A DNA stretch of 64,000 nucleotides, from contig OZ025681.1 in assembly GCA_964019335.1 (NCBI GenBank), positions 62,001 to 126,000 on the forward strand, in the 5' to 3' direction. The DNA is from Diplonema japonicum. Taxonomy: Eukaryota > Protista > Euglenozoa: Diplonemea. The position numbers and the translations under genes are program-made. Below are positions 5,556 to 62,049 of the stretch, piece by piece; the first letter of the stretch is position 1; every line of letters begins with the position of its first letter. The notes under the pieces are model-generated. The model was not told where the DNA came from. It saw only the letters and a program-made list of their open reading frames with translations, and did not search any database.

Positions 5556-5644
5556 TTGTCCCCCCCCCCTCCCTTCCCACTGCACTAAAGCGGCGTAGAG
5601 TTAGGTGCGAAAATAGACACTAAATAAAGAAGAAAACGAAAATA

Positions 5645-7680: not shown

Positions 7681-7701
7681 TGTCAAAAGAAAATACAACA
7701 G

Positions 7702-11297: not shown

Positions 11298-11431
11298 CTT
11301 TATGACTATATGTCTTGGTCGCACGAGCAAAAAAAGGTTTAAAAAAGCTGCGAAAAGCCTTTGCTCGGAAAGAGTTGCATATAGTTATTTGAAATCAGTC
11401 GTTGAAAGATATAAATAACTGTAACAAATAC
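11298..11431. repeat. Dispersed repeat Y
   Basis: ttatgactat..cgcacgagcaaaaaaaggttt..aaaaagctgcgaaa..tttgctcgg..agttgcatatagttat..tgtaacaaa recurs at 43078-43220. Confidence 0.7.
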
Positions 11432-11482
11432 AAAATGGTCCAGCAGGGATTTGCGGAAGAAAAAGAAGAAAAGCAGAAATAC

Positions 11483-11559
11483 ATATGAGTTAAAGGGAGT
11501 CTTTGTGAGACGCCCCCTTGTTCTCATCCTCTACCTGCACCTGTCCCCTTTCAGCAGCG
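11483..11559 (-). mobile_element. 3'-terminal fragment of family R1, about 80 nt downstream of the copy 3 stop codon
   Basis: atatgagttaaagggagtctttgtgagacgcccccttgttctcatcctctacctgcacctgtcccctttcagcagcg is nearly identical to about 44047-44123. Confidence 0.75.
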
Positions 11560-11637
11560 AAATATTACAAAAAAAAAAGATGGATAGAAATCCATCCAGC
11601 GTGAGCTTTTCTTTTCACTCAGTGATCACTACCTCGG

Positions 11638-22274: not shown

Positions 22275-22430
22275 TTTCTTTTTAAAGTATCTGTTGTAGT
22301 TACGCATGTCGCTAAAAAAGAAAGTCAGGGAACGTGTAAAAGCCAAGATACCCATGAGGGAAAGAAGAACAGAACACGTGATCTGTAGTCCCTCATCCGC
22401 CGCAGTGCCCTGGGAAAAAAGAGAAAGAGT

Positions 22431-36959: not shown

Positions 36960-39900
36960 CTAGTGGCAAAATCTAGATCTCAGATCCTGAAGTGAGTCAG
37001 CCAGGTAGCCTGCCATCTCTGTGCCTTGTGTGGACCACGCTGCCTCGATGGCCACCATCTGTTTCTTGTTGCTCTCACTGTTGAGCAAGGTGAGATGTGC
37101 CATGCAAGAGGCAACAGAGTTGGCGTCGGTAGCGTTCCTGGCGTAGGCGTACATCCACTCCTCGTTCTCTGTCTCGAGGAACGAGCCTGCACGGAAGATG
37201 ACCTGGTCGCTGCCGGACCTCTTGTGCTCCAAGGCGTACACAGTGACGGGTTCCACCTCCATGCACCCCTTCACAACCAGCGCCACAGAGTTCTCCAGCA
37301 TCACCCCCGCCTTCAAGGTGCACCCCCTCTCCGACAGGTACCTCACAGATGGCATCACCTTCCCAAGCGCCGTGAACGCCTTCAACGCAAGCGACCCACA
37401 CGATGCTACGGTAGCCTTCCCCGTCGCACACCCGATCCCGACAGCGTGCTTCCCAAGCTCGCTCCCCAACCTGTCCCGCACCATCACCGCGCACTGGCAC
37501 GCCTTCATGTTGTGTGACACAAGATGCGTCGTGATGTTCAGCCCGATGATGCTCTGGTCGCCAGTCGTGCTGAGAAGAGCTCCCCTCCCACCACCGCTCG
37601 TCACCCCGCTCACCGCATCCAAGATCGTCGTCACGTGTCCCACAGAGTCCCCAGGGTACCAGATAGACACAAGGCTGATGCTTTTCGTCGTTGCCTGCAT
37701 CTTCATCTGGCTCACCACACCTATCGGTGCAGGGGTGTCACCAGTATGGTGGGAGGTTGCAGTGCGCGATGAACGTGACGTCTTTGAAAGGGACTCTTCA
37801 TCAACATCCGAGGACTCGTCCTTCTGGAAGAGGGAGGCGGGCATGTAGGCCTTGTACTCGTTGAGGATGTCGCACATGGCATAGAAGCCAGAGAGCAGGG
37901 CGGAGACCTCCAGAAGAATGCTGTCCCTCTTCACCACCTTGTCCATTTCCATGTTCTCCACATGCTTCATGTCCCGCACAAGGCTGATGAAGGGCTGGGT
38001 GATCACAACAGCACATGCAAGAAGGACCACAATTCCAATAGCTGCAAGCATCACAGACAGGTCGATCGCCTCCTCATATGCATCCTCCGCATCCCCCATG
38101 ATCACAACGTGTGGTGTGATGTACACCAGTAGCCAGTCAATGCTGTAGGTTAGGTACTTCGCTTCGACATCTGAAGCAGCCTTCTTGATGTTCAGCATTG
38201 AGGCATACACCTTCTCACCACCAGAGGAGTACAGGTACGACCTCTCAGGGTCAATGAGTGATGTGTTCCAGTTCTCGATGCTCGCAAGGGCACCAGAGAC
38301 CCACGGGTGTGCCACCCCAGAAACAGCCCCAATGCCTGACAACACTGTGCCGACAGGTTGCTGCTTGTCATCGTTCGAGAGAAGCACCTTCCTCGTTGTC
38401 CTGTCGATGAGCACGATCAGTGACCTCGCAGGTACCCGCATGCGTGCAATGTCCTGTTTGATGTTCCCAAGAACCCTTGACATGAGGAGTGCAAAGGTCG
38501 CACTGTTCTTCTCCACAAGGCTCTCAATAGTTCCGTGGATGGAAATCTCAAGAGCAAGCATGCTCTGCTGCCTGAGCCGCTCCGAGAGGTCCTCGCTGAT
38601 GTCGCGGATCGCAGTGTCGTTCCTGGTCACCACCACACCGAGCACCACGGCGAAGGAGGTGAGTGCCACAACCCCAAGCATCACAGAGACAGGAACCTTA
38701 AAAGAAATATCATTGCAGAGGCTTCTGGCTCCCCTCACAATCATCCACACGATTCCAACCAGGAAAACACCACAACAGAGAGAGATCACCACCATTGCCA
38801 CCCTTGTGTCCGTCCACTCGTCGCGGGAGTAGTCGATGCCAGAGATGTCGATCACGCCAAACAGAACATGAAGGTCCTTCTCCATCGCTGCCACAGCCTC
38901 CGCCCCAGTCTGGCCCTCCGTGAGAAAGAAAGAAGTAACATGCTTGAAGACGATGTTGACGCAGTCCCCGTACAGTTCCTTGCACCCAGCACTTGGGCGG
39001 TGCACCAGCCTGTCCCAGAACTCTGGGTAGGCCTGCATCGACTTCGCCAGCATTGGGTTCGAGCTGTTGAACTTTACCCAGAAGTCAGGCCTGTCCATCA
39101 CATCCTGACGAGCAGGCTCGTTTCCAGTGAGGTCGAAGAATGAGAAGTGCTCAGACAGGTCGCTGACAAGATCCTGGGCTGCCTCCTTCAGGGGTGTGTG
39201 CTTGTTGATGCCAATGCTCCAGTCCCCAGAGCAGCCTGCCCCGTTGTTCCCAGGGATGGGCCCTATCTGGATGTCCCAGCCTAAAGAAGAGTTGTCAATG
39301 TTCGCCTGGTTCATCACGGTACTGTCGGAGGACCACAGGATGAGGCACGCTGACTTCCCTGCAAGAAAGTTTGTTTTAGCACCCCCACTGGTGAGTCCCC
39401 AGAGGTTGTGCGGGGCAATGGTGCCCACCCAGCGCTTCCACATGGTAAGGGTACGTGCCGCCGCAGGGTTGTTCACCGTCACGTTCCCACTGTCGTCAAC
39501 CACATTCCCAGCACCATCAAAACCCGACATGAGCGTCACGAGCATGTAAATAATACGGTTCTGCGAGTTCGAGTCGGTCGGAAGCAGTACACCATCGAAG
39601 TCGGTGTTCCCACCAGCACGCTCCTTCTTCACGAGGGTGTCCAAGGTCGTCTCGAACTCCTCCCAGGTAGCGGGGTAGGTGAGACCGTGCTTGTCGAAGA
39701 GGTCCTTGCGGTAGAACACCACCATCTGGTTGGTCTGCCTCGTGAGGGTGTAGAGCTTCCCGTTCGGAGACATGTGAAGCTGCCACTTCTTCCTGATGAT
39801 GTTGGGGTTGATGTCCAGCTCGATGAGCTCGTCCTGAAGGGTGGTGACCCACGGGGTGTCCAGGCTCATCACCTCGTAACCTGTCTCCTTGTTGTACAAC

Positions 39901-40169
39901 ATGTTCTGCAGGAAGGCGAAGTCGTTGTCATGGTTGTACGAAAACTCCTTCAGATCGATGTACTGGATCCCCACGTCGGGGTGCTTGGCTGTGAAGTTGT
40001 CGTTGACTTCGCACAGGGTTGTGTTCAATGCGGAAGTGATTGCAGTGTGGACATGCAGAGTGTGATTTTTGTTGTCAGGAAGCGTGCAATTGTCCTTGTT
40101 AGATCCGTAGACATCAGCAACGTTGCACAGCACTGCCACGTACAACAGCACACCTTTCGCTCCCATCAT
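36960..40169 (-). CDS. Receptor copy 7 (1069 aa); SBP subtype III
   Basis: ORF with signal peptide MMGAKGVLLYVAVLCNVADVYG and the same motifs. Confidence 0.93.
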   Translation of the reverse strand: MMGAKGVLLYVAVLCNVADVYGSNKDNCTLPDNKNHTLHVHTAITSALNTTLCEVNDNFTAKHPDVGIQYIDLKEFSYNHDNDFAFLQNMLYNKETGYEVMSLDTPWVTTLQDELIELDINPNIIRKKWQLHMSPNGKLYTLTRQTNQMVVFYRKDLFDKHGLTYPATWEEFETTLDTLVKKERAGGNTDFDGVLLPTDSNSQNRIIYMLVTLMSGFDGAGNVVDDSGNVTVNNPAAARTLTMWKRWVGTIAPHNLWGLTSGGAKTNFLAGKSACLILWSSDSTVMNQANIDNSSLGWDIQIGPIPGNNGAGCSGDWSIGINKHTPLKEAAQDLVSDLSEHFSFFDLTGNEPARQDVMDRPDFWVKFNSSNPMLAKSMQAYPEFWDRLVHRPSAGCKELYGDCVNIVFKHVTSFFLTEGQTGAEAVAAMEKDLHVLFGVIDISGIDYSRDEWTDTRVAMVVISLCCGVFLVGIVWMIVRGARSLCNDISFKVPVSVMLGVVALTSFAVVLGVVVTRNDTAIRDISEDLSERLRQQSMLALEISIHGTIESLVEKNSATFALLMSRVLGNIKQDIARMRVPARSLIVLIDRTTRKVLLSNDDKQQPVGTVLSGIGAVSGVAHPWVSGALASIENWNTSLIDPERSYLYSSGGEKVYASMLNIKKAASDVEAKYLTYSIDWLLVYITPHVVIMGDAEDAYEEAIDLSVMLAAIGIVVLLACAVVITQPFISLVRDMKHVENMEMDKVVKRDSILLEVSALLSGFYAMCDILNEYKAYMPASLFQKDESSDVDEESLSKTSRSSRTATSHHTGDTPAPIGVVSQMKMQATTKSISLVSIWYPGDSVGHVTTILDAVSGVTSGGGRGALLSTTGDQSIIGLNITTHLVSHNMKACQCAVMVRDRLGSELGKHAVGIGCATGKATVASCGSLALKAFTALGKVMPSVRYLSERGCTLKAGVMLENSVALVVKGCMEVEPVTVYALEHKRSGSDQVIFRAGSFLETENEEWMYAYARNATDANSVASCMAHLTLLNSESNKKQMVAIEAAWSTQGTEMAGYLADSLQDLRSRFCH

Positions 40170-45068: not shown

Positions 45069-48000
45069 CTAGTGGCAAAATCTAGATCTCAGATCCTGAA
45101 GTGAGTCAGCCAGGTAGCCTGCCATCTCTGTGCCTTGTGTGGACCACGCTGCCTCGATGGCCACCATCTGTTTCTTGTTGCTCTCACTGTTGAGCAAGGT
45201 GAGATGTGCCATGCAAGAGGCAACAGAGTTGGCGTCGGTAGCGTTCCTGGCGTAGGCGTACATCCACTCCTCGTTCTCTGTCTCGAGGAACGAGCCTGCA
45301 CGGAAGATGACCTGGTCGCTGCCGGACCTCTTGTGCTCCAAGGCGTACACAGTGACGGGTTCCACCTCCATGCACCCCTTCACAACCAGCGCCACAGAGT
45401 TCTCCAGCATCACCCCCGCCTTCAAGGTGCACCCCCTCTCCGACAGGTACCTCACAGATGGCATCACCTTCCCAAGCGCCGTGAACGCCTTCAACGCAAG
45501 CGACCCACACGATGCTACGGTAGCCTTCCCTGTTGCACACCCGATCCCGACAGCGTGCTTCCCAAGCTCGCTCCCCAACCTGTCCCGCACCATCACCGCG
45601 CACTGGCACGCCTTCATGATGTGTGACACAAGATGCGTCGTGATGTTCAGCCCGATGATGCTCTGGTCGCCAGTCGTGCTGAGAAGAGCTCCCCTCCCAC
45701 CACCGCTCGTCACCCCGCTCACCGCATCCAAGATCGTCGTCACGTGTCCCACAGAGTCCCCAGGGTACCAGATAGACACAAGGCTGATGCTTTTCGTCGT
45801 TGCCTGCATCTTCATCTGGCTCACCACACCTATCGGTGCAGGGGTGTCACCAGTATGGTGGGAGGTTGCAGTGCGCGATGAACGTGACGTCTTTGAAAGG
45901 GACTCTTCATCAACATCCGAGGACTCGTCCTTCTGGAAGAGGGAGGCGGGCATGTAGGCCTTGTACTCGTTGAGGATGTCGCACATGGCATAGAAGCCAG
46001 AGAGCAGGGCGGAGACCTCCAGAAGAATGCTGTCCCTCTTCACCACCTTGTCCATTTCCATGTTCTCCACATGCTTCATGTCCCGCACAAGGCTGATGAA
46101 GGGCTGGGTGATCACAACAGCACATGCAAGAAGGACCACAATTCCAATAGCTGCAAGCATCACAGACAGGTCGATCGCCTCCTCATATGCATCCTCCGCA
46201 TCCCCCATGATCACAACGTGTGGTGTGATGTACACCAGTAGCCAGTCAATGCTGTAGGTTAGGTACTTCGCTTCGACATCTGAAGCAGCCTTCTTGATGT
46301 TCAGCATTGAGGCATACACCTTCTCACCACCAGAGGAGTACAGGTACGACCTCTCAGGGTCAATGAGTGATGTGTTCCAGTTCTCGATGCTCGCAAGGGC
46401 ACCAGAGACCCACGGGTGTGCCACCCCAGAAACAGCCCCAATGCCTGACAACACTGTGCCGACAGGTTGCTGCTTGTCATCGTTCGAGAGAAGCACCTTC
46501 CTCGTTGTCCTGTCGATGAGCACGATCAGTGACCTCGCAGGTACCCGCATGCGTGCAATGTCCTGTTTGATGTTCCCAAGAACCCTTGACATGAGGAGTG
46601 CAAAGGTCGCACTGTTCTTCTCCACAAGGCTCTCAATAGTTCCGTGGATGGAAATCTCAAGAGCAAGCATGCTCTGCTGCCTGAGCCGCTCCGAGAGGTC
46701 CTCGCTGATGTCGCGGATCGCAGTGTCGTTCCTGGTCACCACCACACCGAGCACCACGGCGAAGGAGGTGAGTGCCACAACCCCAAGCATCACAGAGACA
46801 GGAACCTTAAAAGAAATATCATTGCAGAGGCTTCTGGCTCCCCTCACAATCATCCACACGATTCCAACCAGGAAAACACCACAACAGAGAGAGATCACCA
46901 CCATTGCCACCCTTGTGTCCGTCCACTCGTCGCGGGAGTAGTCGATGCCAGAGATGTCGATCACGCCAAGCAGAACATGAAGGTCCTTCTCCATCGCTGC
47001 CACAGCCTCCGCCCCAGTCTGGCCCTCCGTGAGAAAGAAAGAAGTAACATGCTTGAAGACGATGTTGATGCAGTCCCCGTACAGTGCCTTGCACCCAGCA
47101 CTTGGGCGGTGCACCAGCCTGTCCCAGAACTCGGGGTAGGCCTGCATCGACTTCGCCATAATTGGGTTCACCTCATTGAACTTTACCCAGAAGTCAGGCC
47201 TGTTCATCACATCCTGACGAGCAGGCTCGTTTCCAGTGAGGTCGAAGAATGAGAAGTGCTCAGACAGGTCGCTGACAAGATCCTGGGCTGCCTCCTTCAG
47301 GGGTGTGTGCTTGTTGATGCCAATGCTCCAGTCCCCAGAGCAGCCTGCCCCATTGTTCCCAGGGATGGGCCCTATCTGGATGTCCCAGCCGATTGTAGAG
47401 TTGTCGTTAATTTTGTTCATCACGGTACTGTCGGAGGACCACAGGATGAGGCACGCTGACTTCCCTGCAAGAAAGTTATTCCTCGCACCCCCACTGGTGA
47501 GTCCCCAGAGGTTGTGCGGGGCAATGGTGCCCACCCAGCGCTTCCACATCTCAAGGGTGCGTGCCGCCGCAGGGTTGTTCACCGTCACGTTCCCACTGTC
47601 GTCAACCACATTCCCAGCACCATCAAAACCCGACATGAGCGTCACGAGCATGTAAATAATACGGTTCTGCGAGTTCGAGTCGGTCGGAAGCAGTACACCA
47701 TCGAAGTCGGTGTTCCCACCAGCACGCTCCTTCTTCACGAGGGTGTCCAAGGTCGTCTCGAACTCCTCCCAGGTAGCGGGGTAGGTGAGACCGTGCTTGT
47801 CGAAGAGGTCCTTGCGGTAGAACACCACCATCTGGTTGGTCTGCCTCGTGAGGGTGTAGAGCTTCCCGTTCGGAGACATGTGAAGCTGCCACTTCTTCCT
47901 GATGATGTTGGGGTTGATGTCCAGCTCGATGAGCTCGTCCTGAAGGGTGGTGACCCACGGGGTGTCCAGGCTCATCACCTCGTAACCTGTCTCCTTGTTG

Positions 48001-48263
48001 TACAACATGTTCTGCAGGAAGGTGAAGTCGTTGTCATTGTTGTACGAAAAGTCGTTCAGATCGATGTACTGGATCCCCACGTCGGGGTGCTTGGCTGTGA
48101 AGTTGTTGTTGACTTCGCACAGGGTTGTGTTCAGCGCGGAAGTGATTGCAGTGTGGACATGCAGAGTGTGCTTTTTGTTGTCAGGAAGCGGGCAGCTTCC
48201 GTAGACATCAGCAACGTTGCACAGCACTGCCACGTACAACAGCACACCTTTCGCTCCCATCAT
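45069..48263 (-). CDS. Receptor copy 8 (1064 aa); SBP subtype III, C-terminal 60% near-identical to copy 7
   Basis: ORF with the same signal peptide and motifs as copy 7. Confidence 0.93.
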   Translation of the reverse strand: MMGAKGVLLYVAVLCNVADVYGSCPLPDNKKHTLHVHTAITSALNTTLCEVNNNFTAKHPDVGIQYIDLNDFSYNNDNDFTFLQNMLYNKETGYEVMSLDTPWVTTLQDELIELDINPNIIRKKWQLHMSPNGKLYTLTRQTNQMVVFYRKDLFDKHGLTYPATWEEFETTLDTLVKKERAGGNTDFDGVLLPTDSNSQNRIIYMLVTLMSGFDGAGNVVDDSGNVTVNNPAAARTLEMWKRWVGTIAPHNLWGLTSGGARNNFLAGKSACLILWSSDSTVMNKINDNSTIGWDIQIGPIPGNNGAGCSGDWSIGINKHTPLKEAAQDLVSDLSEHFSFFDLTGNEPARQDVMNRPDFWVKFNEVNPIMAKSMQAYPEFWDRLVHRPSAGCKALYGDCINIVFKHVTSFFLTEGQTGAEAVAAMEKDLHVLLGVIDISGIDYSRDEWTDTRVAMVVISLCCGVFLVGIVWMIVRGARSLCNDISFKVPVSVMLGVVALTSFAVVLGVVVTRNDTAIRDISEDLSERLRQQSMLALEISIHGTIESLVEKNSATFALLMSRVLGNIKQDIARMRVPARSLIVLIDRTTRKVLLSNDDKQQPVGTVLSGIGAVSGVAHPWVSGALASIENWNTSLIDPERSYLYSSGGEKVYASMLNIKKAASDVEAKYLTYSIDWLLVYITPHVVIMGDAEDAYEEAIDLSVMLAAIGIVVLLACAVVITQPFISLVRDMKHVENMEMDKVVKRDSILLEVSALLSGFYAMCDILNEYKAYMPASLFQKDESSDVDEESLSKTSRSSRTATSHHTGDTPAPIGVVSQMKMQATTKSISLVSIWYPGDSVGHVTTILDAVSGVTSGGGRGALLSTTGDQSIIGLNITTHLVSHIMKACQCAVMVRDRLGSELGKHAVGIGCATGKATVASCGSLALKAFTALGKVMPSVRYLSERGCTLKAGVMLENSVALVVKGCMEVEPVTVYALEHKRSGSDQVIFRAGSFLETENEEWMYAYARNATDANSVASCMAHLTLLNSESNKKQMVAIEAAWSTQGTEMAGYLADSLQDLRSRFCH

Positions 48264-48523: not shown

Positions 48524-51500
48524 TCACCCACCCAAAACAGCCCTGAGCATCTTCGTGATGCCTGTCTCCTTCATGATTGTAGAGAAGGCCTTCCCAATCC
48601 CCGACTTGAGGAAGGTCTTCGCGATGGGGTCAGCATAGGTGAGGACAAGGAGCTTCATCGGCTCGTTCAAGACGATGTCCTGCATGAAGGCGATGGCGCA
48701 GCCTGTGAAGAAGCTCTGTTGGGTCTCCTGCTCCCAGCGCAAGGCCTCCGTGAGGAAAATGGTCACGGAAGAGAGCTGTATGAAGAAGGCGAGGGCATAG
48801 GCGAGGTAGGTCACGTGGTGCGGTAGGTGCTGTGGAAGGAGGCCCCCTTTCTTCAGCTGGTAGGACCGCAAGACAACGAGCCACCCCACCAGAAGGAACA
48901 CGAGAGGGGCCAACCACTGCTCCGTCCCGCCCACCTCCACCTTGCTCCCCTCCCTTCGAATGGACGGTTGTTTCTCCAAGCAGACGAACAAGCACCCAGA
49001 CCACTGCAGCACGAACACAGCGGACCCGAGGTGCCCCATGCTGTACCTCTGGTACATCACCCACCAGCACCCCAAGGCCGCCACAATCTGCACACAGCTC
49101 GCCCCTGCCCCTGCCCACCACTCCACCTCGTAGTACAGACACAACACGATGAACAGGTGCACCGACCAGAAGACCGACAGCACCATGGGGAGAAGCCGCG
49201 GGCGCCACGAGCTTACCCCGAGTGCCACGAAGATCATCACCCACAGGAACAACAAGGCCACACCGATCCCAACCTCTCCAGAGTCTATCATCAACACGCA
49301 CCCGTACATCCCCAGTGACATCAGCAGCAGCGCCACAGCCTTCGCGAGCTGGAAGAAGTACGTTGCTATGCTTAGGATCAAGAAGAACGAAACGATAAGT
49401 GGCCACCACCTAGCCCCCGTCATGAAGTAGATCCCAACGTGGACGAGTGCCAGGAAGATGATAAACCTCATCGAACGCCCCGCTTCCTTGTTTGCCCGCT
49501 GGCAAAGTGTCATTTCTTCAGGTTCCTCTTCTTCCTCTTTATTATCAGCGTCTGACAGCTGCCTCTTGCCCCTTGGAGAAACTACTGTTGTTTCGTTCTC
49601 TGTCAGGAACACGGGCTTCGCTGACCCCAAAGTGGGGCTGAACACAGCAGGGAGGCTGCACCGCCCACTTAATATGGGGCTCACCGGCCTTGAGAAATCT
49701 TCATCTACCCTGCCCTCTTTATCTGTCTCCTCTGCCAACTTCTTCGCCTCCCACCACTCCTTGTGTGAAATGGACTGGTACTCAGGTGTGCTGTACTGTG
49801 TGTATTCGCAAATGAGGCGTATCTCAGGGTTCCGACCCTGCTTCTTGCTCACCTCGTCAGGGATCTGATACCAGCAGTCAAGGGACGCCGTTGCAGACGA
49901 GTCGTCTCGAACAATGCAGTCGATGATGTCCTGCATCGAGATGCTGAGCGACGCCACAAGGTTCTCCGTGCCAGTCTCCTGCAGACCGTCGTCATCGTAC
50001 ACGTTCACCACCACCACAGACTCCTTCTCCTCCCGCACGGGGTAGCTCACCACACAGCTCCCATCGAACACAGGGTTGTGGTCGTCCCACACTGTCGCTG
50101 ACTTCCAAACACGGCACTCACTCTCCACAAGAACGAAGCAGTCAGGGATGTCGTCCTCATCATCGCTTGCTCCCCCTCGCATAGATAGGTCCCTTGCCTG
50201 AACCACCCTCACATTCAGCTCCCCCAGAATGGGGTACTCGGGGTACGGGTCGAGTGCAGCCCACGACCACAGCTGTTTAGTAGTGTTTCTTGACAAAAAT
50301 ACAAAATCGGTAGAACATACAACGGGTGCTTTCTTAACAGATCGTTTGAAAAGCAGCCCCAGCAGCACTGTTGTCGGGGTCATCATGCAAGCGGAGATGA
50401 CTGCCACCATGATCGTTTTAGCGACAGTTCTAAGTAGAAAATAAATCTCCTTCACAAACATACCCATTCTCGCTCCTGCCGTGGAAGACAGCGAGGATGA
50501 AGAAGACTGTGTTCATCGCTGCGAAGAGGACAGCAAGCCTCCGTGGGCGAGAGTAATGTTGCCCTGGTGTTCTGAAAAACACACAGAACCAGACGTGAGC
50601 ACGTAGCGCAACCAGGCCCTTTTCTATGAAAAACCTAATTCGTTCACTACATTTCAGGTCATCAACAAGTACTTCTTCCGAGGGAGTAACGCTCTTTCTT
50701 CGTACACCCGAAAGGTTAGTCCCTGCGGTGGACATTCTCTTACAATCAGGTAGGTGCCCTGGTAACTCCGGCTGGCAAGACGGATCTGACACGTCAGAGT
50801 AGTTATCATCATAGCTTTCTTTGTTCATTGCTTCAGGTGCTACATCTGAAGGAGAAAGGCATGGCGAAGGCACAGACACGAAGCCACCTTGGTGATCTGC
50901 CGACAGTGGGTCATGAGAAGAGTGTTCCTTGTAGCCATGGCACGTTTCTTGAACCTTTATAAACTCTTTCCTAAGTGCCATCGTCTTGCTGCCTGCTTTC
51001 GGGGAGAAATACTCCTCCGCCACAATAGACTGCTGCAGCATGGCTTCCTGCTTGCTGAACTCGAACCGCGCTACTTCCCTAACCATCTTGTTCAGCTCCA
51101 TCGCTTGTTGTATTGCAGCTGCCTTTGCTTCTTCGAAGGTTTCACACGGTTTGTCCTTTTGATGCTGAAAGATGTGTGCTGCCCTCAAGTAGTTCCCTTC
51201 CTTGCACTCGCGAACACCATCCTCCCACCTGAAGACGTGGCCTTCCGCCGCCATATTCTCAATGTCCACAGCTTTTATCGAAGTCAGACCCGGCAAGGCA
51301 CCGTCTAAATCAGGTAATGTACACTCGTTTCCAGACATGGCGAGTGCATTGTTCACCTTTTCCTCCTGCTTCAATCGAGCCCTCTCCGATGGTGCAGCTT
51401 TGTTGTTCACAAGCCCAGCATCCTGCCGCCTGTCGTAGAAGTAGGTCACAACGAAGAGGATGTAGTAGAGCAAGTAGAGTGTCCCCACGACAGTGAGGGT

Positions 51501-54500
51501 GGGGATGTTCACCGCTGAGAGCTGTGTCCAGCTGTTGAAGTTCGAGCTGCTGAAGAGCCGTTTCAGGTTTGTTGCGGGCATCACCTCAGAGGCAATGAAG
51601 GCCCCCACAGTCCCAAGCTTTGACTCCCCGGTCAGCTCTACAGTCCCGTTGTTGTTGTTGTTGTTGTTGTTTCCTGCCGCCAGCACCACAGCCGCCCGGT
51701 AGGTCACGCTCCCACCACACGAAGGGTTCTGCTGCTGTTGTGCAGTTGCCGTCAACAAGCCCTCCGAAAGAAACCCGTTCCACTGAAGGTCCTGACCCGG
51801 TTCCCAGGAGCCTGTGGTCTCGTTCCACACGCGCAGGGCAATGTTGCAGGGGTAGGGGTCCACGAACTCCGCGTCCACCGTGAAGTTCACCTTCATTGTC
51901 ACAGCCTCGTTTGCCGAGGCCCCTCCGAAGGAGGAAACCCGTACCTGCACCACGTCCCCTGTCGAGGTCTCGTTGTTCCCAGGGACTGGGTACAGGTCCC
52001 CTGCTGCCGCCTTCACGAGGACACGCCCTCCCCCTGACAGCCCAGGGAGTGCCACAGAGGTTGTTGAGTTCTCCAGTCGCACCGTTGCCGTTCCCGATGT
52101 CGCTTCACCGATCGTCGTCACCGCTATCTTCAGAACTGTCCCAGAGAAGCTGATGTCCCCCGTCCCGTTATGAGCAAGGAGGGATGAGGCCAGGCTGTCC
52201 GTCAACGCCACCACAGACTCCTTCGCTTCCCCTGTCGCGGACAGCGTCCCGAGCCCATCCACCGCCTGCAGCACCCGCCCAACATCGCCAGCTGTCCCGT
52301 TCTCAATGGCTGTCTGCCCTAGCTGCTCCACCACCTGTGCTGCCCCCACCACCTCTGCGCTCACTTCCTCCGCCGTCCCCGAGCCAGTCCCGGACCCAAT
52401 CTGAGACACGATCGACTCTGCCACGGTGGACGCCTCCCCAGGTGACGTGATCACCTGAACAGTGCCCCGAAAGGTCTGAGAAGTGATCCAGTTGTTGCTG
52501 TTGCTGCTGCCGCTGCCAACACCCCCGCCTGTCCCCTGCACACCAACCTGGATCACGAGGTCTCCCTCCGGCAGGGCGTTCAGAGAGAAGGAGGCGACCC
52601 TCGTGTGTCTCACAACGACCCCGTCCACCGCCACCACGTACTGCGCCTCCGAAGACGACCCAAGGAACCACTCGTCGTAGTCAAAGCTCACCTTCGTCCC
52701 AACAGTGAGGTTCACGAGGGGGGGCGTGAAAGTGATCACCGGGAGCTGCTTCGGAACGAACACACGAAAGGAGTCGCTACCCCCGCCTGTTCCCACGCTG
52801 TCTATCCCGCACAACAGAGAGCCTCCAGTGTTCCCCATCGTGGCCCCAAGGTCCACCTCTAAATACATCGTCGTCTTGCTCACAGCAAGGCCGACAGCTG
52901 AAAAAGAAGAAGAAGCAGAACTAGAACCGTAATAACCGTTGCACTGAACCACTATCTCGTTCTTCGACACACCAACACAGGAAAGCGCCGCCGTGTGCAA
53001 GGCCTCCATCCTGCGAACGAGGTCCAAGGCCGCAGGAACAGACCAGCTTGCGAGGAGCGAGGGGTCCACCACCACCTCCGCCCGACCCAACGAAGTGTCC
53101 AAAAAGACCACAGACAGGGCTCCCGAGTCAGAGGAAGAAGAGAGCCCCAGCTCCGAAGCGAGAAACCCTTGGACCTCGCCGGCTGAGGAGAGCTGCTGGC
53201 CCACTATGCTGAAGTGCGCAACGAGGGGTGTGAACACGCCGTCCGCTGACAAGAGAACCCGCTGACGCTCCCCCACAGGGCTTGCCACGAACACCTCCCT
53301 CCCGAATACACGAACCTGCGGCTGTTGCTGTGAAGGGGAATAACCCTTCACCTCTGACATCGTGGAGGAAGGGGCAGAGAATGGCGCAGGGGTTGCTGGA
53401 GACACAGTGTTGGGGAAACTCGTTGCGGGGGAAAGGGTGGAAGGAGCGCCTGTTGTGGCTGTTGTGGATGGAACAGTTGTCGGTACCGCTGTGTGCAGAG
53501 AAGGTGACTGGGAAGGAAGCTGTGTGGGTGCAAGTGTTGGAGGAACCAAGGTCGAAGGGGAAGTAGACGTGCCAGAAGGGACAGGGGTCGGTGCGGGGCT
53601 CTGCGGTGCAACTGATGGTGCAGAGGTGGGTGTCTTCGTGGGAGCCACTGTGGGCGGAAAAGGTGTTGGTGGTGGCGAGACAGTGGACCCTGGAACAGAT
53701 GTTGGTGCAAGGGTAGAAGGAGCTGGTGTTGGAGGGGCTGACGTAGCTGGGAAAGAAGTTGAAGGAGCAAAGGTTTCTGGGACCGTTGTGGAACCAGGTG
53801 GTGTTGGAGTGGGGATAAATGTTGCAGGAGCAGGAGTAGGTGGAGCTGGTGTTGCAGGTGCAAGAGTGGATGGCGAGGGAGTTGGCGATGAAGGGACTGG
53901 TGTGGCGACCAGTGTCGAGGGTGCAGAGGTGGGTGGTGAAGGAATTGTCGAGGGAGCAGGGGTCGAAGGTACAGGGGTCGAAGGTGCAGAGGTCGAAGGT
54001 GCAGGGGTCGAAGGTGCAGAGGTCGAAGGTGCAGAGGTAGAAGGTGCAGGGGTCGAAGGTGCAGAGGTCGAGGGAGCAGGGGTTGAAGGTACAGGGGTGG
54101 GGACCGGTGTTGGAGCAGGGGTCGAGGGAGCAGGGGTAGATGGTGCAGGTGTTGAGGGAGCAGGGGTAGAAGGTGCAGGAGTTGAAGGAGCCGGTGTTGG
54201 AGGGACTGGAGTTGGTGATGGGGTGGATGATGTCGGAGACGGTGAAATGGCCCTGTGTGATCAATAAAGCTGGTTATAGTAACATACGAAGCTGAAGCGA
54301 TGGCTATCTGTGCTGAGGTGCAGGCTGACGAGGTCGTGCAGACTACATGAGTAAGGTCTCCCGAAGGCTCCGAAGCAAGACCTGTGCATGCACTGTCAAC
54401 ATCACACATCAAGCCACAATAATACGAACCACCCGAAGTTACACTTGCTGGGCATGTATAAGTGAGACCGGAGCATGCATCAGTCGACATGCATTTGAGA

Positions 54501-55096
54501 ATGCTGCCGATGTCTGACGACGCCGATGAGGTGATTGCGGCTGAGGAACAGGCGGTGGTCCCTAAGCAGACCACCGTGCCAGAGCCAGAAGTCCCGAGCG
54601 TGTACTTTATCTTTTCGCAGGCATTGGTTCCCATGCATGATACCTGGCACGACTTACCAGTGGGGCACGCAACTGTCACATCAGAGCAAGCTGTTTCGGC
54701 CCCGCAAACCAGCTGGAGTGCTCCTCCGCTCCCTTGCTGGGTGATGGTGAGCTCCGAACACGAGCTTTGACCGCTGCAGGTGATGGTGCACGCCCCGCTT
54801 GCGGGGCAGTTAATGGTGGACTGGCTGCAGGCACTCGTGTCACTACAAGTCAAAGTGCAGTCACCAGTACTTGGACAGGTGAGTGCTAACATTGCACAGC
54901 TACTTGCAGCGCTGCATGAGGTCATGCAGCTGTATGAAGAGTCACAAGTGGCGGCACAGTTGGAGCAAGCGGTGCTGCTGGAGCATAACAATGCCTCATT
55001 TGCAGAAGAAGAGAAGGTGACTGACGACGAGCAGCCGGTGATGTCGGCAGCAGCAAAGTACACACATGTCAGCACAACAACGACCGTTCGCGGCAT
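48524..55096 (-). CDS. Polycystin-1 (PKD1)-like protein A, about 2151 aa, 4 exons (55096-54288, 54252-50464, 50429-50321, 50272-48524)
   Basis: Removing three GTATG..AG introns joins three ORF-track pieces into 6456 nt (2152 codons). The product has a signal peptide, Cys-rich repeats, an S/T/P stalk, PKD1-like motifs (LYLLYYILFVVTYFYDRRQD; HVWFCVFFRTPGQHYSRPRRLAVLF; IMVAVISACMMTPTTVLLGLLFKRS; LPHHVTYLAYAL..DIVLNEPMKLL) and a C2 domain. Confidence 0.82.
50273..50320 (-). other. Gene A intron 3 (48 nt, in frame, no stop)
   Basis: GTATGTTC..CACTACTAAACAG at the same position as the frame-breaking 37-nt intron in gene B (KKAPV|LWSW versus KKVPV|LWSW). Confidence 0.8.
50430..50463 (-). other. Gene A intron 2 (34 nt)
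   Basis: GTATGTTTGTG..CTACTTAG. Removal restores ENG-TVAKTIM. Confidence 0.85.
54253..54287 (-). other. Gene A intron 1 (35 nt)
   Basis: GTATGTTACT..CACACAG. Removal joins the Cys-rich exon to the S/T/P stalk frame (ASAS-AISPSPT). Confidence 0.85.
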
Positions 55097-55812
55097 GCCA
55101 CACCCCTGTAGATGAGAAATCGAAAAGTGGTATACGATTACTTTAATAAAAAAACGAGAGGATTCTCACAAAAAAGCATTGTCTCTTGTGGTGCAGCACA
55201 GCCCTAATTCGGCACATGACCGGAAAGGCTGTCTCAGGAAGCTTTCTTCTTTTTCTTTCTTGGCATTAACCACTTCCTGAAATTGCCAAAATACAGTAAC
55301 AAACGTGGCAATAATCGAATCACCAGAAAAGATTGCTTCGTAGATATTCCCTTCTGTTGGACAAATCACAAGACACGTCCTCCTTAAAGGGAATGTGCCT
55401 CAGTAAGGCCAACAAAAACAGACTGAATCTATTATTTCGTAACTTGCAGCACTAAGCAGAGGTGCTTAACAACCGTAACTCAGCATGATTGAAAGCTAGA
55501 TCAAACAACTGACCCTAACATCCTGAAAGCTAGCACAAGTATTTACCTGGAAAGGCATACTTTCAAAGACACTTTGAGCATCTTCGTAATAATAAGAAAG
55601 CCAGCAAGTTAGTAAACAAGTAACAAGTAAGTGTATCTCTTCACAGATCAAATGGCTTGTTCGCAATCAGAGAGAGTGCCTCGACGGTGAAGGACGTGGC
55701 CTACAGTACCCCGAGGTCGGAAGGTGCCGTGGTCATAGAGGTCATCTTGTCTCAATCAAAGTGCAGCTCACGACCACACGACTATAATATGCGAGGGCCT
55801 TGAAGCCCAAGC

Positions 55813-58800
55813 TCACCCACCCAAAACAGCCCTGAGCATCTTCGTGATGCCTGTCTCCTTCATGATTGTAGAGAAGGCCTTCCCAATCCCCGACTTGAGG
55901 AAGGTCTTCGCGATGGGGTCAGCATAGGTGAGGACAAGGAGCTTCATCGGCTCGTTCAAGACGATGTCCTGCATGAAGGCGATGGCGCAGCCTGTGAAGA
56001 AGCTCTGTTGGGTCTCCTGCTCCCAGCGCAAGGCCTCCGTGAGGAAAATGGTCACGGAAGAGAGCTGTATGAAGAAGGCGAGGGCATAGGCGAGGTAGGT
56101 CACGTGGTGCGGTAGGTGCTGTGGAAGGAGGCCCCCTTTCTTCAGCTGGTAGGACCGCAAGACAACGAGCCACCCCACCAGAAGGAACACGAGAGGGGCC
56201 AACCACTGCTCCGTCCCGCCCACCTCCACCTTGCTCCCCTCCCTTCGAATGGACGGTTGTTTCTCCAAGCAGACGAACAAGCACCCAGACCACTGCAGCA
56301 CGAACACAGCGGACCCGAGGTGCCCCATGCTGTACCTCTGGTACATCACCCACCAGCACCCCAAGGCCGCCACAATCTGCACACAGCTCGCCCCTGCCCC
56401 TGCCCACCACTCCACCTCGTAGTACAGACACAACACGATGAACAGGTGCACCGACCAGAAGACCGACAGCACCATGGGGAGAAGCCGCGGGCGCCACGAG
56501 CTTACCCCGAGTGCCACGAAGATCATCACCCACAGGAACAACAAGGCCACACCGATCCCAACCTCTCCAGAGTCTATCATCAACACGCACCCGTACATCC
56601 CCAGTGACATCAGCAGCAGCGCCACAGCCTTCGCGAGCTGGAAGAAGTACGTTGCTATGCTCAGGATCAAGAAGAACGAGGCGACTAGTGGCCACCACTT
56701 GTAGCCGATCAAGAACACAATTCCAACATGTACAAAAACTAGAAAGATGATGAGCCTCACCGATCGTCCCGCCTGCTTGTTTGCCCGCTGGCAAAGTGTC
56801 AATTCCAGTTCCTCCTCGCTGACCGGACTTTCCGTGCCTGCTTCATTGTTGTCAGACACCACAGGCAGTGCGACTTGCTTACCGCCTTGATGCATTGTCG
56901 GGGACATCGGGATTGTCTCGTTCTCTGTCAGGAACACGGGCTTCGGCGACCCCAAAGTGGGGCTGAACACACTTGCGAGGCTACACCGCCCGGAGCTTAA
57001 CATTGGGCTCATCCGCCTTGAGAAATTGGGATCTAACCTGTCCTTCTCTTTTACTTCTGCCAACTTCTTCGCCTCCCACCACTCCTTGTGTGAAATGGAC
57101 TGGTACTCAGGTGTGTTGTACTGTGTGTATTCGCAAATGAGGCGTATCTCAGGGTTCCGCCCCTGCTTCTTGCTCACCTCGTCAGGGATCTGATACCAGC
57201 AGTCAAGGGACGCCGTTGCAGACGAGTCGTCTCGAACAATGCAGTCGATGATGTCCTGCATCGAGATGCTGAGCGACGCCACAAGGTCTTCTGTGCCGAT
57301 CTCCTGCAGACCGTCGTCATCGTACACGTTCACCACCACCACAGACTCCTTCTCCTCCCGCACGGGGTAGCTCACCACACAGCTCCCATCGAACACAGGG
57401 TTGTGGTCGTCCCACACTGTCGCTGACTTCCAAACACGGCACTCACTCTCCACAAGAACGAAGCAGTCAGGGATGTCGTCCATCGCTTCTCCTCGGATGG
57501 ACAGGTCCCTTGCTTGAACCACCCTCACATTCAGCTCCCCCAGAATGGGGTACTCGGGGTACGGGTCGAGTGCAGCCCACGACCACAGCTGTTTAGTAGT
57601 GTGTTGTGCTTTTGAGGAAACATACCACCGGAACTTTTTTCACCGCCCTCTTGAAAAGCAGCCCCAGCAGCACTGTTGTCGGGGTCATCATGCAAGCGGA
57701 GATGACCGCCACCATGATTGTCTTGGCGATAGTTCTGAATTAGATTTGTGATTGTTGACTTTTTGTATCTCCACAAACATACCCATTCTCGTTCCTGCCG
57801 TGGAAGACAGCACAGATGAAGAAGACTGTGTTCATCGCTGCGAAGAGGACAGCAAGCCTCTGCGGGCGGGAGAACGACTGTCCCGGCTGCCGGAACAACA
57901 CGCAGAACCACAAGTGTGCCCGGAGGGCTATTGCAGCTTTCGAGGCAAATAAGTGAAGATTATCACAGCAGTTCATGCCGATTGCTTCTTCCTCTGTGGC
58001 GGTAACGCTCACCTTTCGCATGCTAGAAAGGTTAGTCCCTGCAACTGACTTCCTTTTCCCAGGAAGACCACCAGGTATATCCATGCCATCATGCTGTTCC
58101 TCGAAGTCTATGTGGTCAAGGTCGGCTTGGTTCGAATTGCTTTTCGTTTCTGTGAACAAGTCAGAAGAAGCCGACACACACGGTGAAGGAACGGACTCGA
58201 AGCCAAGGAGTTGGGGGTCCAGCGTCAGCACAGGTGCAGAGTGCTCTTCATAATTGGGGCAAGTAGTTTGTTCCTTGGGTATTAAGGCAGGTGGAATCCC
58301 AGTTATAGCCTTTGGTGAATACTCGTGCCGCTGTGCCTTTGCCTTTCCTTTTAGGGAAGTCCCATTGCGCTCTTTCTGTGCTTCTAGGTCCTCTGACAGT
58401 GCTCCTTGCACTATTAAGTCTTGTGCAAAAGGAAGGTCATGAGACATCATTCTTTTGTTTGCTTTCGGGGTGAAATACTCCTCCGCCACAATAGACTGCT
58501 GCAGCATGGCTTCCTGCTTGCTGAACTCGAACCGCGCTACTTCCCTAACCATCTTGTTCAGCTCCATCGCTTGTTGTATTGCAGCTGCCTTTGCTTCTTC
58601 GAAGGTTTCACACGGTTTGTCCTTTTGATGCTGAAAGATGTGTGCTGCCCTCAAGTAGTTCCCTTCCTTGCACTCGCGAACACCATCCTCCCACCTGAAG
58701 ACGTGGCCTTCCGCCGCCATCTCCTCAATGTCTACAGCTCTAATCGAAGTCAGACCCGAAGTCAAACGCTCGTGAAAGGTACTTCCAAAATCAGGTAATG

Positions 58801-61800
58801 TCCACTTTTTTTCAGGCAAGGCGAGTGCATTGTTCACCTTTTCCTCCTGCTTCAATCGAGCCCTCTCCGATGGTGCAGCTTTGTTGTTCACAAGCCCAGC
58901 ATCCTGCCGCCTGTCGTAGAAGTAGGTCACAACGAAGAGGATGTAGTAGAGCAAGTAGAGTGTCCCCACGACAGTGAGGGTGGGGATGTTCACCGCTGAG
59001 AGCTGTGTCCAGCTGTTGAAGTTCGAGCTGCTGAAGAGCCGTTTCAGGTTTGTTGCGGGCATCACCTCAGAGGCAATGAAGGCCCCCACAGTCCCAAGCT
59101 TTGACTCCCCGGTCAGCTCTACAGTCCCGTTGTTGTTTCCTGCCGCCAGCACCACAGCCGCCCGGTAGGTCACGCTCCCACCACACGAAGGGTTCTGCTG
59201 CTGTTGTGCAGTTGCCGTCAACAAGCCCTCCGAAAGAAACCCGTTCCACTGAAGGTCCTGACCCGGTTCCCAGGAGCCTGTGGTCTCGTTCCACACGCGC
59301 AGGGCAATGTTGCAGGGGTAGGGGTCCACGAACTCCGCGTCCACCGTGAAGTTCACCTTCATTGTCACAGCCTCGTTTGCCGAGGCCCCTCCGAAGGAGG
59401 AAACCCGTACCTGCACCACGTCCCCTGTCGAGGTCTCGTTGTTCCCAGGGACTGGGTACAGGTCCCCTGCTGCCGCCTTCACGAGGACACGCCCTCCCCC
59501 TGACAGCCCAGGGAGTGCCACAGAGGTTGTTGAGTTCTCCAGTCGCACCGTTGCCGTTCCCGATGTCGCTTCACCGATCGTCGTCACCGCTATCTTCAGA
59601 ACTGTCCCAGAGAAGCTGATGTCCCCCGTCCCGTTATGAGCAAGGAGGGATGAGGCCAGGCTGTCCGTCAACGCCACCACAGACTCCTTCGCTTCCCCTG
59701 TCGCGGACAGCGTCCCGAGCCCATCCACCGCCTGCAGCACCCGCCCAACATCGCCAGCTGTCCCGTTCTCAATGGCTGTCTGCCCTAGCTGCTCCACCAC
59801 CTGTGCTGCCCCCACCACCTCTGCGCTCACTTCCTCCGCCGTCCCCGAGCCAGTCCCGGACCCAATCTGAGACACGATCGACTCTGCCACGGTGGACGCC
59901 TCCCCAGGTGACGTGATCACCTGAACAGTGCCCCGAAAGGTCTGAGAAGTGATCCAGTTGTTGCTGTTGCTGCTGCCGCTGCCAACACCCCCGCCTGTCC
60001 CCTGCACACCAACCTGGATCACGAGGTCTCCCTCCGGCAGGGCGTTCAGAGAGAAGGAGGCGACCCTCGTGTGTCTCACAACGACCCCGTCCACCGCCAC
60101 CACGTACTGCGCCTCCGAAGACGACCCAAGGAACCACTCGTCGTAGTCAAAGCTCACCTTCGTCCCAACAGTGAGGTTCACGAGGGGGGGCGTGAAAGTG
60201 ATCACCGGGAGCTGCTTCGGAACGAACACACGAAAGGAGTCGCTACCCCCGCCTGTTCCCACGCTGTCTATCCCGCACAACAGAGAGCCTCCAGTGTTCC
60301 CCATCGTGGCCCCAAGGTCCACCTCTAAATACATCGTCGTCTTGCTCACAGCAAGGCCGACAGCTGAAAAAGAAGAAGAAGCAGAACTAGAACCGTAATA
60401 ACCGTTGCACTGAACCACTATCTCGTTCTTCGACACACCAACACAGGAAAGCGCCGCCGTGTGCAAGGCCTCCATCCTGCGAACGAGGTCCAAGGCCGCA
60501 GGAACAGACCAGCTTGCGAGGAGCGAGGGGTCCACCACCACCTCCGCCCGACCCAACGAAGTGTCCAAAAAGACCACAGACAGGGCTCCCGAGTCAGAGG
60601 AAGAAGAGAGCCCCAGCTCCGAAGCGAGAAACCCTTGGACCTCGCCGGCTGAGGAGAGCTGCTGGCCCACTATGCTGAAGTGCGCAACGAGGGGTGTGAA
60701 CACGCCGTCCGCTGACAAGAGAACCCGCTGACGCTCCCCCACAGGGCTTGCCACGAACACCTCCCTCCCGAATACACGAACCTGCGGCTGTTGCTGTGAA
60801 GGGGAATAACCCTTCACCTCTGACATCGTGGAGGAAGGGGCAGAGAATGGCGCAGGGGTTGCTGGAGACACAGTGTTGGGGAAACTCGTTGCGGGGGAAA
60901 GGGTGGAAGGAGCGCCTGTTGTGGCTGTTGTGGATGGAACAGTTGTCGGTACCGCTGTGTGCAGAGAAGGTGACTGGGAAGGAAGCTGTGTGGGTGCAAG
61001 TGTTGGAGGAACCAAGGTCGAAGGGGAAGTAGACGTGCCAGAAGGGACAGGGGTCGGTGCGGGGCTCTGCGGTGCAACTGATGGTGCAGAGGTGGGTGTC
61101 TTCGTGGGAGCCACTGTGGGCGGAAAAGGTGTTGGTGGTGGCGAGACAGTGGACCCTGGAACAGATGTTGGTGCAAGGGTAGAAGGAGCTGGTGTTGGAG
61201 GGGCTGACGTAGCTGGGAAAGAAGTTGAAGGAGCAAAGGTCTCTGGGACGAGTGTTGGGGTAAGGGTCGTGGGCGTTGTTGGAGTGGGGATAAATGTTGG
61301 TACAGGAGCGAGAGTCGACGGAGCAGGAGTGGGCGGAGCTGGTGTTGCAGGTGCAAGAGTGGATGGCGAGGGAGTTGGCGATGACGGGACTGAGGTGGAG
61401 GCTGGTGTGGCCGAGGGTGCAGAGGTGGGCGGTGAAGAAGTTGGGGCGGTTGTCGAGGGAGCAGGGGTCGAAGGTGCAGGGGTCGAGGGAGTAGAGGTTG
61501 ACGGTGCAGGAGTTGACGGAGCAGGGGTCGAGGGAGAAGAAGTAGAGGGTGCTGAGGTAGAAGGTGCAGGTGTTGAGGGAGCAGATGTAGAAGGTGCTGG
61601 TGTTGATGGAGCAGAGGTAGAAGGTGCCGGTGTTGAGGGAACAGGGGTAGAAGGTGCCGGTGTTGAGGGAGCAGTTGTAGAAGGTGCCGGTGTTGAGGGA
61701 GCAGTTGTAGAAGGTGCCGGTGTTGAGGGAACAGGGGTAGAAGGTGCCGGTGTTGAGGGAGCAGTTGTAGAAGGTGCCGGTGTTGAGGGAGCAGGGGTAG

Positions 61801-62049
61801 AAGGCGCAGGTGTTGTGGGGGCAGTGGTAGAAGGTGCCGGTGTTGAGGGAGCAGTGGTAGAAGGTGCCGGTGTTGTGGGGGCAGTAGTAGAAGGTGCCGG
61901 TGTTGAGGGAGCAGAGGAAGTACGCGTGGGAGAAAACGCGGAACCGTCCCTGTGCAATTAATATAGTTGGCTATAAAAACATACGAAGATGAGGCGAGAG
62001 AAACAGCATAGTGCACACATGCCAGCACAACGGCCGTTCGCAGGTGCAT
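55813..62049 (-). CDS. Polycystin-1 (PKD1)-like protein B, about 2038 aa, 4 exons (62049-61985, 61949-57783, 57734-57626, 57588-55813)
   Basis: Spliced length is 6117 nt (2039 codons). The signal peptide MHLRTAVVLACVHYAVSLA is homologous to gene A, long stretches are identical to gene A, and the Cys-rich domain is absent. Confidence 0.82.
57589..57625 (-). other. Gene B intron 3 (37 nt)
   Basis: GTATGTTTCC..CACTACTAAACAG. Removal restores the frame. Confidence 0.85.
57735..57782 (-). other. Gene B intron 2 (48 nt, contains an in-frame TAA)
   Basis: GTATGTTTGTG..CTAATTCAG at the same position and phase as gene A intron 2. Confidence 0.85.
61450..61915 (-). repeat. Coding 15-nt tandem repeat (pentapeptide STPAP/STTAP mucin-like stalk)
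   Basis: gtagaaggtgccggtgttgagggagca units. A shorter version is in gene A at about 53940-54200. Confidence 0.9.
61950..61984 (-). other. Gene B intron 1 (35 nt)
   Basis: GTATGTTTTT..TGCACAG with the same phase (TC|G) and length as gene A intron 1. Confidence 0.85.

Follow-up and report, generated by a model that had tools for sequence, protein, structure and literature searches.

Channel-less, 13-helix receptors of diplonemids with a cytosolic C2 domain, a ten-helix membrane module and a probable polycystin-1-like TM2-TM3 hairpin

Do two tandem genes of the diplonemid Diplonema japonicum encode relatives of polycystin-1, and which parts of that protein do they retain? The genes lie at positions 48524-62049 of the window, the whole 64,000-nucleotide (nt) stretch of contig OZ025681.1 (assembly GCA_964019335.1, positions 62,001 to 126,000) that was analyzed. 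All coordinates below are positions in this window, and both genes are on the minus strand. A sequence-only reading had described them as polycystin-1-like receptors without a channel, in which a C2 domain and about eight extra transmembrane (TM) helices are inserted between TM3 and TM4 of PKD1. Most patients with dominant polycystic kidney disease carry mutations in polycystin-1, and to our knowledge the role of the N-terminal five-helix part of this protein is still unclear. Few marine heterotrophs are more abundant than diplonemids, and as far as we know their surface receptors are almost unstudied. Based on the current analysis, the genes belong to a variant restricted to one lineage, which combines a novel membrane module with a TM2-TM3 core that is probably that of polycystin-1. 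Literature searches turned up no account of this family.

The locus consists of two paralogues, genes A and B, with four exons apiece (Table 1). The exons total 6117 nt in gene A and 6456 nt in gene B, both divisible by three; the frame of gene B is restored at its junctions and ends with a stop codon at 48526-48524. All six introns are 34-48 nt long and have the form G|GTATGT...AG, which is consistent with the published intron signature of D. japonicum, i.e., a median of 41 nt, a (G)/GTATG 5' site and a CAG 3' end, with 98% canonical (PMC12621601). The analysis proceeded exon by exon, with the intronless paralogues L019 and L020 serving as contiguous proxies for the spliced proteins. L019 is colinear with the genes across both internal junctions, with equal spacing, and therefore supports the splice model. 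The third intron of gene A is necessarily removed because read-through runs into a TAA. Once intron 3 of gene B is removed, the spacer from VPV to L.VRV is 18 amino acids (aa), the same as in gene A and L019.

Each protein has the same order of parts: signal peptide, Pro/Thr stalk, ectodomain of ~600 aa, juxtamembrane strand, TM1, disordered loop, TM2-TM3, C2 domain, linker, ten helices and a tail of ~38 aa. The elements that the sequence-only reading described were found where it had placed them on the minus strand, as judged by gene models, paralogues and orthologues, and its estimate of about 13 TM helices agrees with hydropathy and AlphaFold2, both of which give 3 + 10 helices. The loop charges of L019, assessed by eye, together with the helix limits of its model, obey the positive-inside rule and, if the N-terminus is outside, place the C2 domain and the tail in the cytosol. 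The genes are not products of chance because there are seven paralogues in the genome and orthologues in the transcriptomes of Namystynia, Artemidia and Hemistasia.

The signal of kinship with polycystin-1 comes from TM2-TM3. When a profile of 13 family sequences (A1) was searched against the PDB (177,635 sequences), polycystin-1 was the sole non-C2 protein among the matches listed, with expectation values (E) of 0.0014 for 8z6f_A and 8z6b_A and 0.0026 for 6a70_B, and the alignment covered the TM2-TM3 columns. A small profile of TM2-TM3 alone, built from own-genome sequences only (A2), had exactly three matches at E<=10, all of them polycystin-1 (E 0.36-0.42). In the A2 alignment, the family motif H.WF..LFR.PG..[FY][ST]RPQR stands opposite polycystin-1 HIWLSIWDRPPRSRFTRIQR, and the Pro-containing TM3 stands opposite VGLVSSVVVYPVYLAILFLFR; the printed alignment confirms the PKD1 strings that the sequence-only reading had given for TM2 and TM3. 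The match also falls in the right topological place, that is, in a hairpin that follows TM1 and a cytosolic loop. It was always confined to the one stretch, TM2-TM3, and a second stretch was never found. A homologue search with E values scaled to 5.8 billion sequences returned nothing or the query alone, and a match of ~20 bits could not have passed it. Overall, TM2-TM3 is probably akin to polycystin-1. The claim of polycystin-1-like motifs is upheld there with moderate strength, by A1 and A2 against the PDB, but not for the hairpin named "TM4/5", which belongs to a part of the protein whose profile has no PDB match.

This part is a ten-helix module, of which the "TM4/5" hairpin is the last and best-conserved portion. 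The N, E, P and K of its NEPxK motif are invariant in 17/17 sequences. The profile of the ten helices (A3) gave no PDB match up to E 10, not even to polycystin-1, and the ESM Atlas gave no named match for the module. AlphaFold2 modeled the L019 module alone as ten helices, with a predicted local distance difference test (pLDDT) of 78.7 and a predicted template modeling score of 0.61. The combination of AlphaFold and Foldseek proposed for the C-terminal helices succeeded in its first half, a confident fold, but yielded no structural relative. Moreover, three database proteins carry the module but have neither TM1-3 nor C2: transcript-derived P0012 joins it to a PDZ domain (Pfam E 7e-8), and P0016 and P0017 join it to a small soluble domain. 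An insertion of eight helices into the TM3-TM4 region of PKD1, with the last hairpin as TM4/5, is not supported, as the module behaves as an autonomous unit and has no PDB match. The module is well conserved, recurs in several different architectures and lacks a PDB relative, which makes it a candidate for a new membrane-protein fold.

The last hairpin opens with LP and closes with EPxKxL, and the spacing of 55 residues is constant in the family. Human PKD1 TM4-5 presumably reads LPAW...WEPLKVL at equal spacing. We regard a relationship between the two hairpins, suggested by LP...EPxKxL and the equal spacing, as improbable. An internal 5+5 repeat of the module was considered and rejected; helices 4-5 showed a weak similarity to helices 6-7 (hhalign E 0.022, probability 2%). 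This similarity, between residues 84-123 and 144-183 of L019:3085-4053, each with a W..H motif, may trace a duplication of a hairpin.

The C2 domain predicted for these proteins was recovered by Pfam, by the PDB profile search and by Foldseek on the model. The Pfam score (PF00168) is 35.5 bits against a gathering cut-off of 22. The C2 part of A1 matched MCTP2 at E 4e-13, as well as the C2 domains of a ferlin (myoferlin) and of synaptotagmin (to E 1e-9). The AlphaFold2 model is a beta-sandwich, with Foldseek TM-scores of 0.6-0.77 to C2 structures. The family consensus retains the Asp-rich loops (..D....SDPFV.. and ..DDDG..), and genes A and B have PDCFV and YDDDG in these loops; the loop-1 aspartates are missing from L019. 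The C2 domain was also said to stand in for PLAT. In polycystin-1, PLAT sits between TM1 and TM2. The proposal fails by position, as the C2 domain follows TM3 and the TM1-TM2 loop, ~280-330 aa in the family, is disordered (pLDDT <50 in the AlphaFold2 model of L019). A distant relative from Namystynia, P0020 (3402 aa), has a pair of EF-hands (Pfam E 2e-8) at the C2 position, in the order GPS-like strand, TM1, TM2 motif, TM3 with MPTTV, EF-hands and ten-helix module. Since C2 and EF-hand alternate in the same loop, this argues that Ca2+ sensing after TM3 may be a conserved function.

The proteins end after the last hairpin, as the sequence-only reading had noted, and have no channel half. All seven genome paralogues (7/7) stop after this hairpin and the tail of ~38 aa. 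The relatives P0001-P0005, P0012, P0016, P0017 and P0020, among which several derive from transcripts, end 0-5 residues from the end of genes A and B, and the similarity to contig X1 of a related organism also ends at the stop codon. The last ~870 coding nt are 100% identical between genes A and B (48524-49390 and 55813-56680), and this identity halts exactly at the stop codon; the flanks past it are unrelated. Identity over ~870 nt but not the flanks points to a recent gene conversion, apparently confined to the ten-helix module. The next gene begins 260 nt downstream of gene B with a signal peptide of its own (ATG at 48263). Pfam found neither PKD_channel (PF08016) nor the polycystin domain (PF20519) in any scanned family member. 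These proteins cannot take the pore-subunit position of polycystin-1 because the TRP-like channel half is missing.

The other landmark domains of polycystin-1 were also sought. The Pfam scan of the family genes found no PLAT (PF01477), in keeping with the earlier description; a six-frame genome search found none either, but its control likewise found nothing. Pfam detected no REJ (PF02010) in genes A and B, and the REJ matches of the genome are on other contigs (C45, C4, C12 and C43). The genome offers many possible PKD2 partners: PKD_channel has at least 72 matches in it, so that channels of the PKD2 type have expanded greatly, but none of the matches is on C34, the contig of the two genes. 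Several PKD_channel genes have frames of 2500-4000 aa with long ankyrin-repeat N-termini. Long PKD_channel genes were considered as 11-TM, PKD1-like bridges and rejected: L025-L027 (C11, C86 and C38) are PKD2-type with ankyrin repeats by Pfam, and these three and L028 (C10) all lack the TM2 and EPxK motifs.

The family has at least seven members in the genome of 62.5 Mb. Four are in tandem on C34, two of them immediately past the end of the window; L019 is farther along C34, L020 is on C63 and one member is on C91. Searches of the same genome with profiles A2 and A3 found these seven only. The intronless L019 (L019:3085-8610:-, 1842 aa) and gene B have 51% identity in the C-terminal module; L020 (L020:3832-9921:-, 2030 aa), also intronless, has 28%. 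A HMMER search with the 647-aa C-terminal exon against 1.84 billion representative proteins had 22 matches. Those with a named source are all diplonemid (Namystynia, Artemidia and Hemistasia), by which the family appears restricted to diplonemids; P0001, P0002 and P0011 are from ENA assemblies.

The N-terminal heads are the variable part. Gene B begins with a Cys-rich domain, for which Pfam has no match, with a periodicity of ~20-25 residues and the pattern C...C...AC..(I/L).C. A similar exon is found upstream of L019 (L019:8355-9326); gene A is without it, and its signal peptide is spliced directly to the Pro/Thr stalk. No Pfam family matched the ectodomains (~600 aa) of genes A and B. In L020 the head is a leishmanolysin-type (peptidase M8) domain with HExxH intact (Pfam E 2.4e-22), so that a protease-type head is set on the same membrane chassis. 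Ahead of TM1, a Cys/Trp box (PCNIALRVWNETTGSWE) and the conserved strand (KLGTVGAFIASEVMP) both resemble the GPS of a REJ- and GPS-bearing gene on contig C45. The nearest named ESM Atlas clusters for the pre-TM1 segment bear PF01825 GPS (0.88 and 0.81), and 9/10 of the best clusters share the family, with only 143 features in common. A GPS before TM1 in this family is a lead only, and the juxtamembrane strand is a candidate for a Cys-less, probably uncleaved GPS or stalk strand. Autoproteolysis is unlikely because the strand has neither the cysteines of a GPS nor the HL|T triad, in whose place stands KLG.

On balance, we lean slightly towards a diplonemid-restricted family of ~13-TM receptors with four parts. 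The first would be a variable head (Cys-rich cap, Pro/Thr stalk, and ectodomain of ~600 aa or leishmanolysin-type domain) with the conserved strand at its end. The second would be the TM1/loop/TM2-TM3 core, in which the TM2-TM3 hairpin probably shares its ancestry with the polycystin-1 counterpart. The third would be a cytosolic Ca2+-sensing module just after TM3, mostly a C2 domain and in one relative an EF-hand pair, and the fourth the autonomous ten-helix module, with the NEPxK hairpin and the amphipathic tail last. The ectodomain may sense contact or a ligand, and the polycystin-1-like core would relay the signal to the ten-helix effector, which may transport a substrate, act as a channel or bind a partner. 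The coupling of core and effector would be tuned as the C2 or EF-hand module docks, in a Ca2+-dependent way, on the inner leaflet, and the Ca2+ may derive from the many PKD2-type channels of the cell. Because variable heads, one of them protease-like, are carried on a constant membrane part, the proteins follow the pattern of adhesion or sensor receptors, and an adhesion or mechanosensory function may be envisaged.

Several results weigh against this explanation. The polycystin-1 match is short (~85 aa) and borderline. It was lost in PDB searches with profiles A5 and A7, to which stalk, TM1 or ectodomain columns had been added, and polycystin-1 was not among the matches listed for A6, a profile of database sequences only that also drew low-complexity noise; for these reasons the signal is fragile. 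Single-sequence PDB searches gave C2 matches or none and never found polycystin-1. For the pre-TM1 segment, Pfam found no GPS even at E<=10, the best local hhalign match to a GPS of the same genome, on the Cys/Trp box, was not significant (E 0.31), and the ESM Atlas match shares only 143 features. Every Foldseek match of the modeled ten-helix module had E>1, and VIA-align was likewise at noise level only. Contig C34 has no PKD_channel match, so that linkage to a PKD2-type gene was not seen. Finally, the introns and 3' end of genes A and B are predictions from sequence logic and orthologues; no run recorded as RNA covers the locus, and the contigs of runs X2, X3 and X6 at the locus are DNA-like, with no splice joints.

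If the borderline E values (0.0014 and 0.36) and the three alternative profiles without the match (A5 and A7 having lost it, and A6 being without it among the matches listed) are given most weight, there may be no true kinship with polycystin-1, and the basic juxtamembrane motif and Pro-kinked helix would have arisen by convergence or chance. Such an origin would fit the failure to detect PLAT, REJ, GPS or PKD_channel in the family genes, and low-complexity columns are able to give E of 1e-3 to 1e-6 in composite profiles. It nevertheless seems unlikely: polycystin-1 was the sole non-C2 protein among the matches listed in two PDB searches, the alignment is in the correct topological place, ~10 motif positions are common and conserved across the family, and receptors with REJ and GPS are present in this genome. 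A relationship more extensive than the one we favor is also conceivable, in which a complete PKD1 TM1-TM5 unit received eight helices and the C2 domain between TM3 and TM4, so that TM4-TM5 would have its orthologue in the last hairpin. This would account for the TM2-TM3 match and for the LP...EPxKxL hairpin with its constant spacing of 55 residues, presumably equal in PKD1, and the even number of added helices would preserve the topology. Against this, the ten-helix profile has no PDB chain at E<=10, the polycystin-1 matches are limited to the single stretch of TM2-TM3, and the hairpin belongs to a unit also found without TM1-3 in P0012, P0016 and P0017. Because the ten-helix unit exists without TM1-3, a separate, fused module fits better, and we consider the insertion quite unlikely.

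Table 1. Positions of the features of genes A and B and of the neighboring array in the window.
Feature	Position	Strand	Remarks
Gene B, whole	48524..55096	-	Exons 55096-54288, 54252-50464, 50429-50321, 50272-48524; ~2151 aa
Gene B, exon 1	54288..55096	-	~270 aa: signal peptide and ~250-aa Cys-rich repeat domain
Gene B, predicted intron 1	54253..54287	-	35 nt, GTATGT..CACAG; Pro/Thr frame (1276-aa open frame) open up to acceptor
Gene B, Pro/Thr/Ser-rich stalk	53349..54252	-	Mucin-like; 15-nt periodic repeats
Gene B, globular ectodomain	51621..53348	-	~575 aa; GPS-like Cys/Trp box at 51801-51851
Gene B, juxtamembrane strand	51567..51620	-	KLGTVGAFIASEVMPATN; conserved in L019, L020, P0006, P0020
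Gene B, TM1	51435..51500	-	Helix also in AlphaFold2 model of L019
Gene B, TM1-TM2 cytosolic loop	50601..51434	-	~280 aa, mostly disordered
Gene B, pre-TM2 motif and TM2	50478..50600	-	AHVWFCVFFRTPGQHYSRPRR; basis: PDB 6a70_B, 8z6b_A, 8z6f_A and family conservation
Gene B, predicted intron 2	50430..50463	-	34 nt; separates TM2 from TM3; junction ..ENG|TVAKT.., colinear with L019
Gene B, TM3	50348..50413	-	IMVAVISACMMTPTTVLLGLLF; aligns with polycystin-1 TM3
Gene B, predicted intron 3	50273..50320	-	48 nt, in frame; predicted spliced by analogy with gene A and L019 spacing
Gene B, C2 domain	49793..50218	-	Cytosolic, after TM3; Pfam E 1.3e-8
Gene B, ten-helix module	48641..49471	-	Last hairpin 48641-48838 ("TM4/5"), invariant N-E-P-x-K
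Gene B, tail	48527..48640	-	38 aa, conserved, amphipathic, cytosolic; P..KT..K...GK, then stop
Gene A, whole	55813..62049	-	Exons 62049-61985, 61949-57783, 57734-57626, 57588-55813; ~2038 aa
Gene A, TM1	58916-58981	-	
Gene A, pre-TM2 motif and TM2	57797..57919	-	
Gene A, TM3	57653-57718	-	
Gene A, C2 domain	57118..57540	-	Pfam E 3.4e-7
Gene A, ten-helix module	55930..56760	-	
Array ORFs	2334-5585, 7702-10881, 11638-15093, 19056-22355, 25786-28986, 30654-33845, 36960-40169, 45069-48263	-	

The C45 gene mentioned above (L029, L031 and L035; ~6700-15800 and far beyond) is a giant, with a frame of 17,230 aa, a REJ match of E 4.8e-39 and a GPS match of E 1.4e-4. Its GPS reads ..ACVYWDEHKKQW...HTSFFTVMP; TM1-TM2-TM3 and a cytosolic tail of great length follow, and no PKD_channel match lies in its vicinity. 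The gene seems to encode a diplonemid REJ/GPS receptor that has no channel. A motif of ~48 aa, D.E..A..G...W..G.R..K....RAAHIF.H, is common to the cytosolic loop of gene B (51000-51150) and the tail of the C45 protein in L035 (BLASTP E 8e-5), and may be a shared site at which a downstream partner docks. A similar string, AAALFRHAL, is present in a third GPS-bearing receptor, L036 on C12. Within the window, an array of eight open reading frames (ORFs) of ~1060-1150 aa occupies 2334-48263 on the same strand as genes A and B. Only the ORF at 45069-48263 was read and scanned, and the likeness of the other seven is assumed from size and strand. This ORF encodes a signal peptide, an ectodomain of the bacterial solute-binding-protein type (SBP_bac_1, Pfam E 2.9e-19) and membrane helices, and its C-terminal part has no Pfam match. 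Its layout may recall that of the trypanosomatid receptor-type cyclases.

Compared with known systems, the family is most readily set beside polycystin-1, PKD1L and REJ proteins (PDB 6A70 chain B, 8Z6F). It shares with these 11-TM receptors the large modular ectodomain, TM1, a cytosolic loop and the TM2-TM3 hairpin, in which the pre-TM2 motif reads H.W[LF]....R.P...[FY][ST]R.[QR]R and TM3 contains a Pro, and possibly, as a lead only, a GPS-like strand before TM1. In contrast to polycystin-1, it has no PLAT between TM1 and TM2, no REJ, no Pfam-detectable GPS, no channel-like half (TM6-TM11) and no polycystin (TOP) domain; instead, it has the C2 or EF-hand module after TM3 and the ten-helix module without a PDB relative. 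As in adhesion G protein-coupled receptors and other GAIN/GPS receptors, a variable adhesion-type head and a stalk lead to a conserved strand before the first helix, but a 7TM domain is absent from the family, as are the cysteines of the GPS and the HL|T triad, and its assignment to GPS falls short of significance. Comparable, too, is the C45 protein, whose order is GPS, TM1, TM2, TM3 and which has the ~48-aa cytosolic motif in common with gene B. While MCTP, ferlins and extended synaptotagmins also place C2 beside transmembrane helices and share the acidic loop residues of the consensus, in this family there is a single C2, set within one of the cytosolic loops of a receptor with 13 TM helices, and no SMP, FerA or multiple C2.

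It is possible, although rather doubtful, that the polycystin-1 membrane core, made up of the GPS-like juxtamembrane strand, TM1 and TM2-TM3, is an ancient portable signaling unit that predates the split of Discoba and animals. Animals would then have joined it to PLAT and the TRP-like channel half, and diplonemids to a Ca2+ sensor (C2 or EF-hand) and the ten-helix module, which would also function by itself behind domains such as PDZ and may represent a new effector class, be it a channel, a transporter or a scaffold. If the proposed explanation is true, the family would show which pieces of polycystin-1 work without the channel half, and the origin of the N-terminal unit of polycystin-1 would lie far outside animals.

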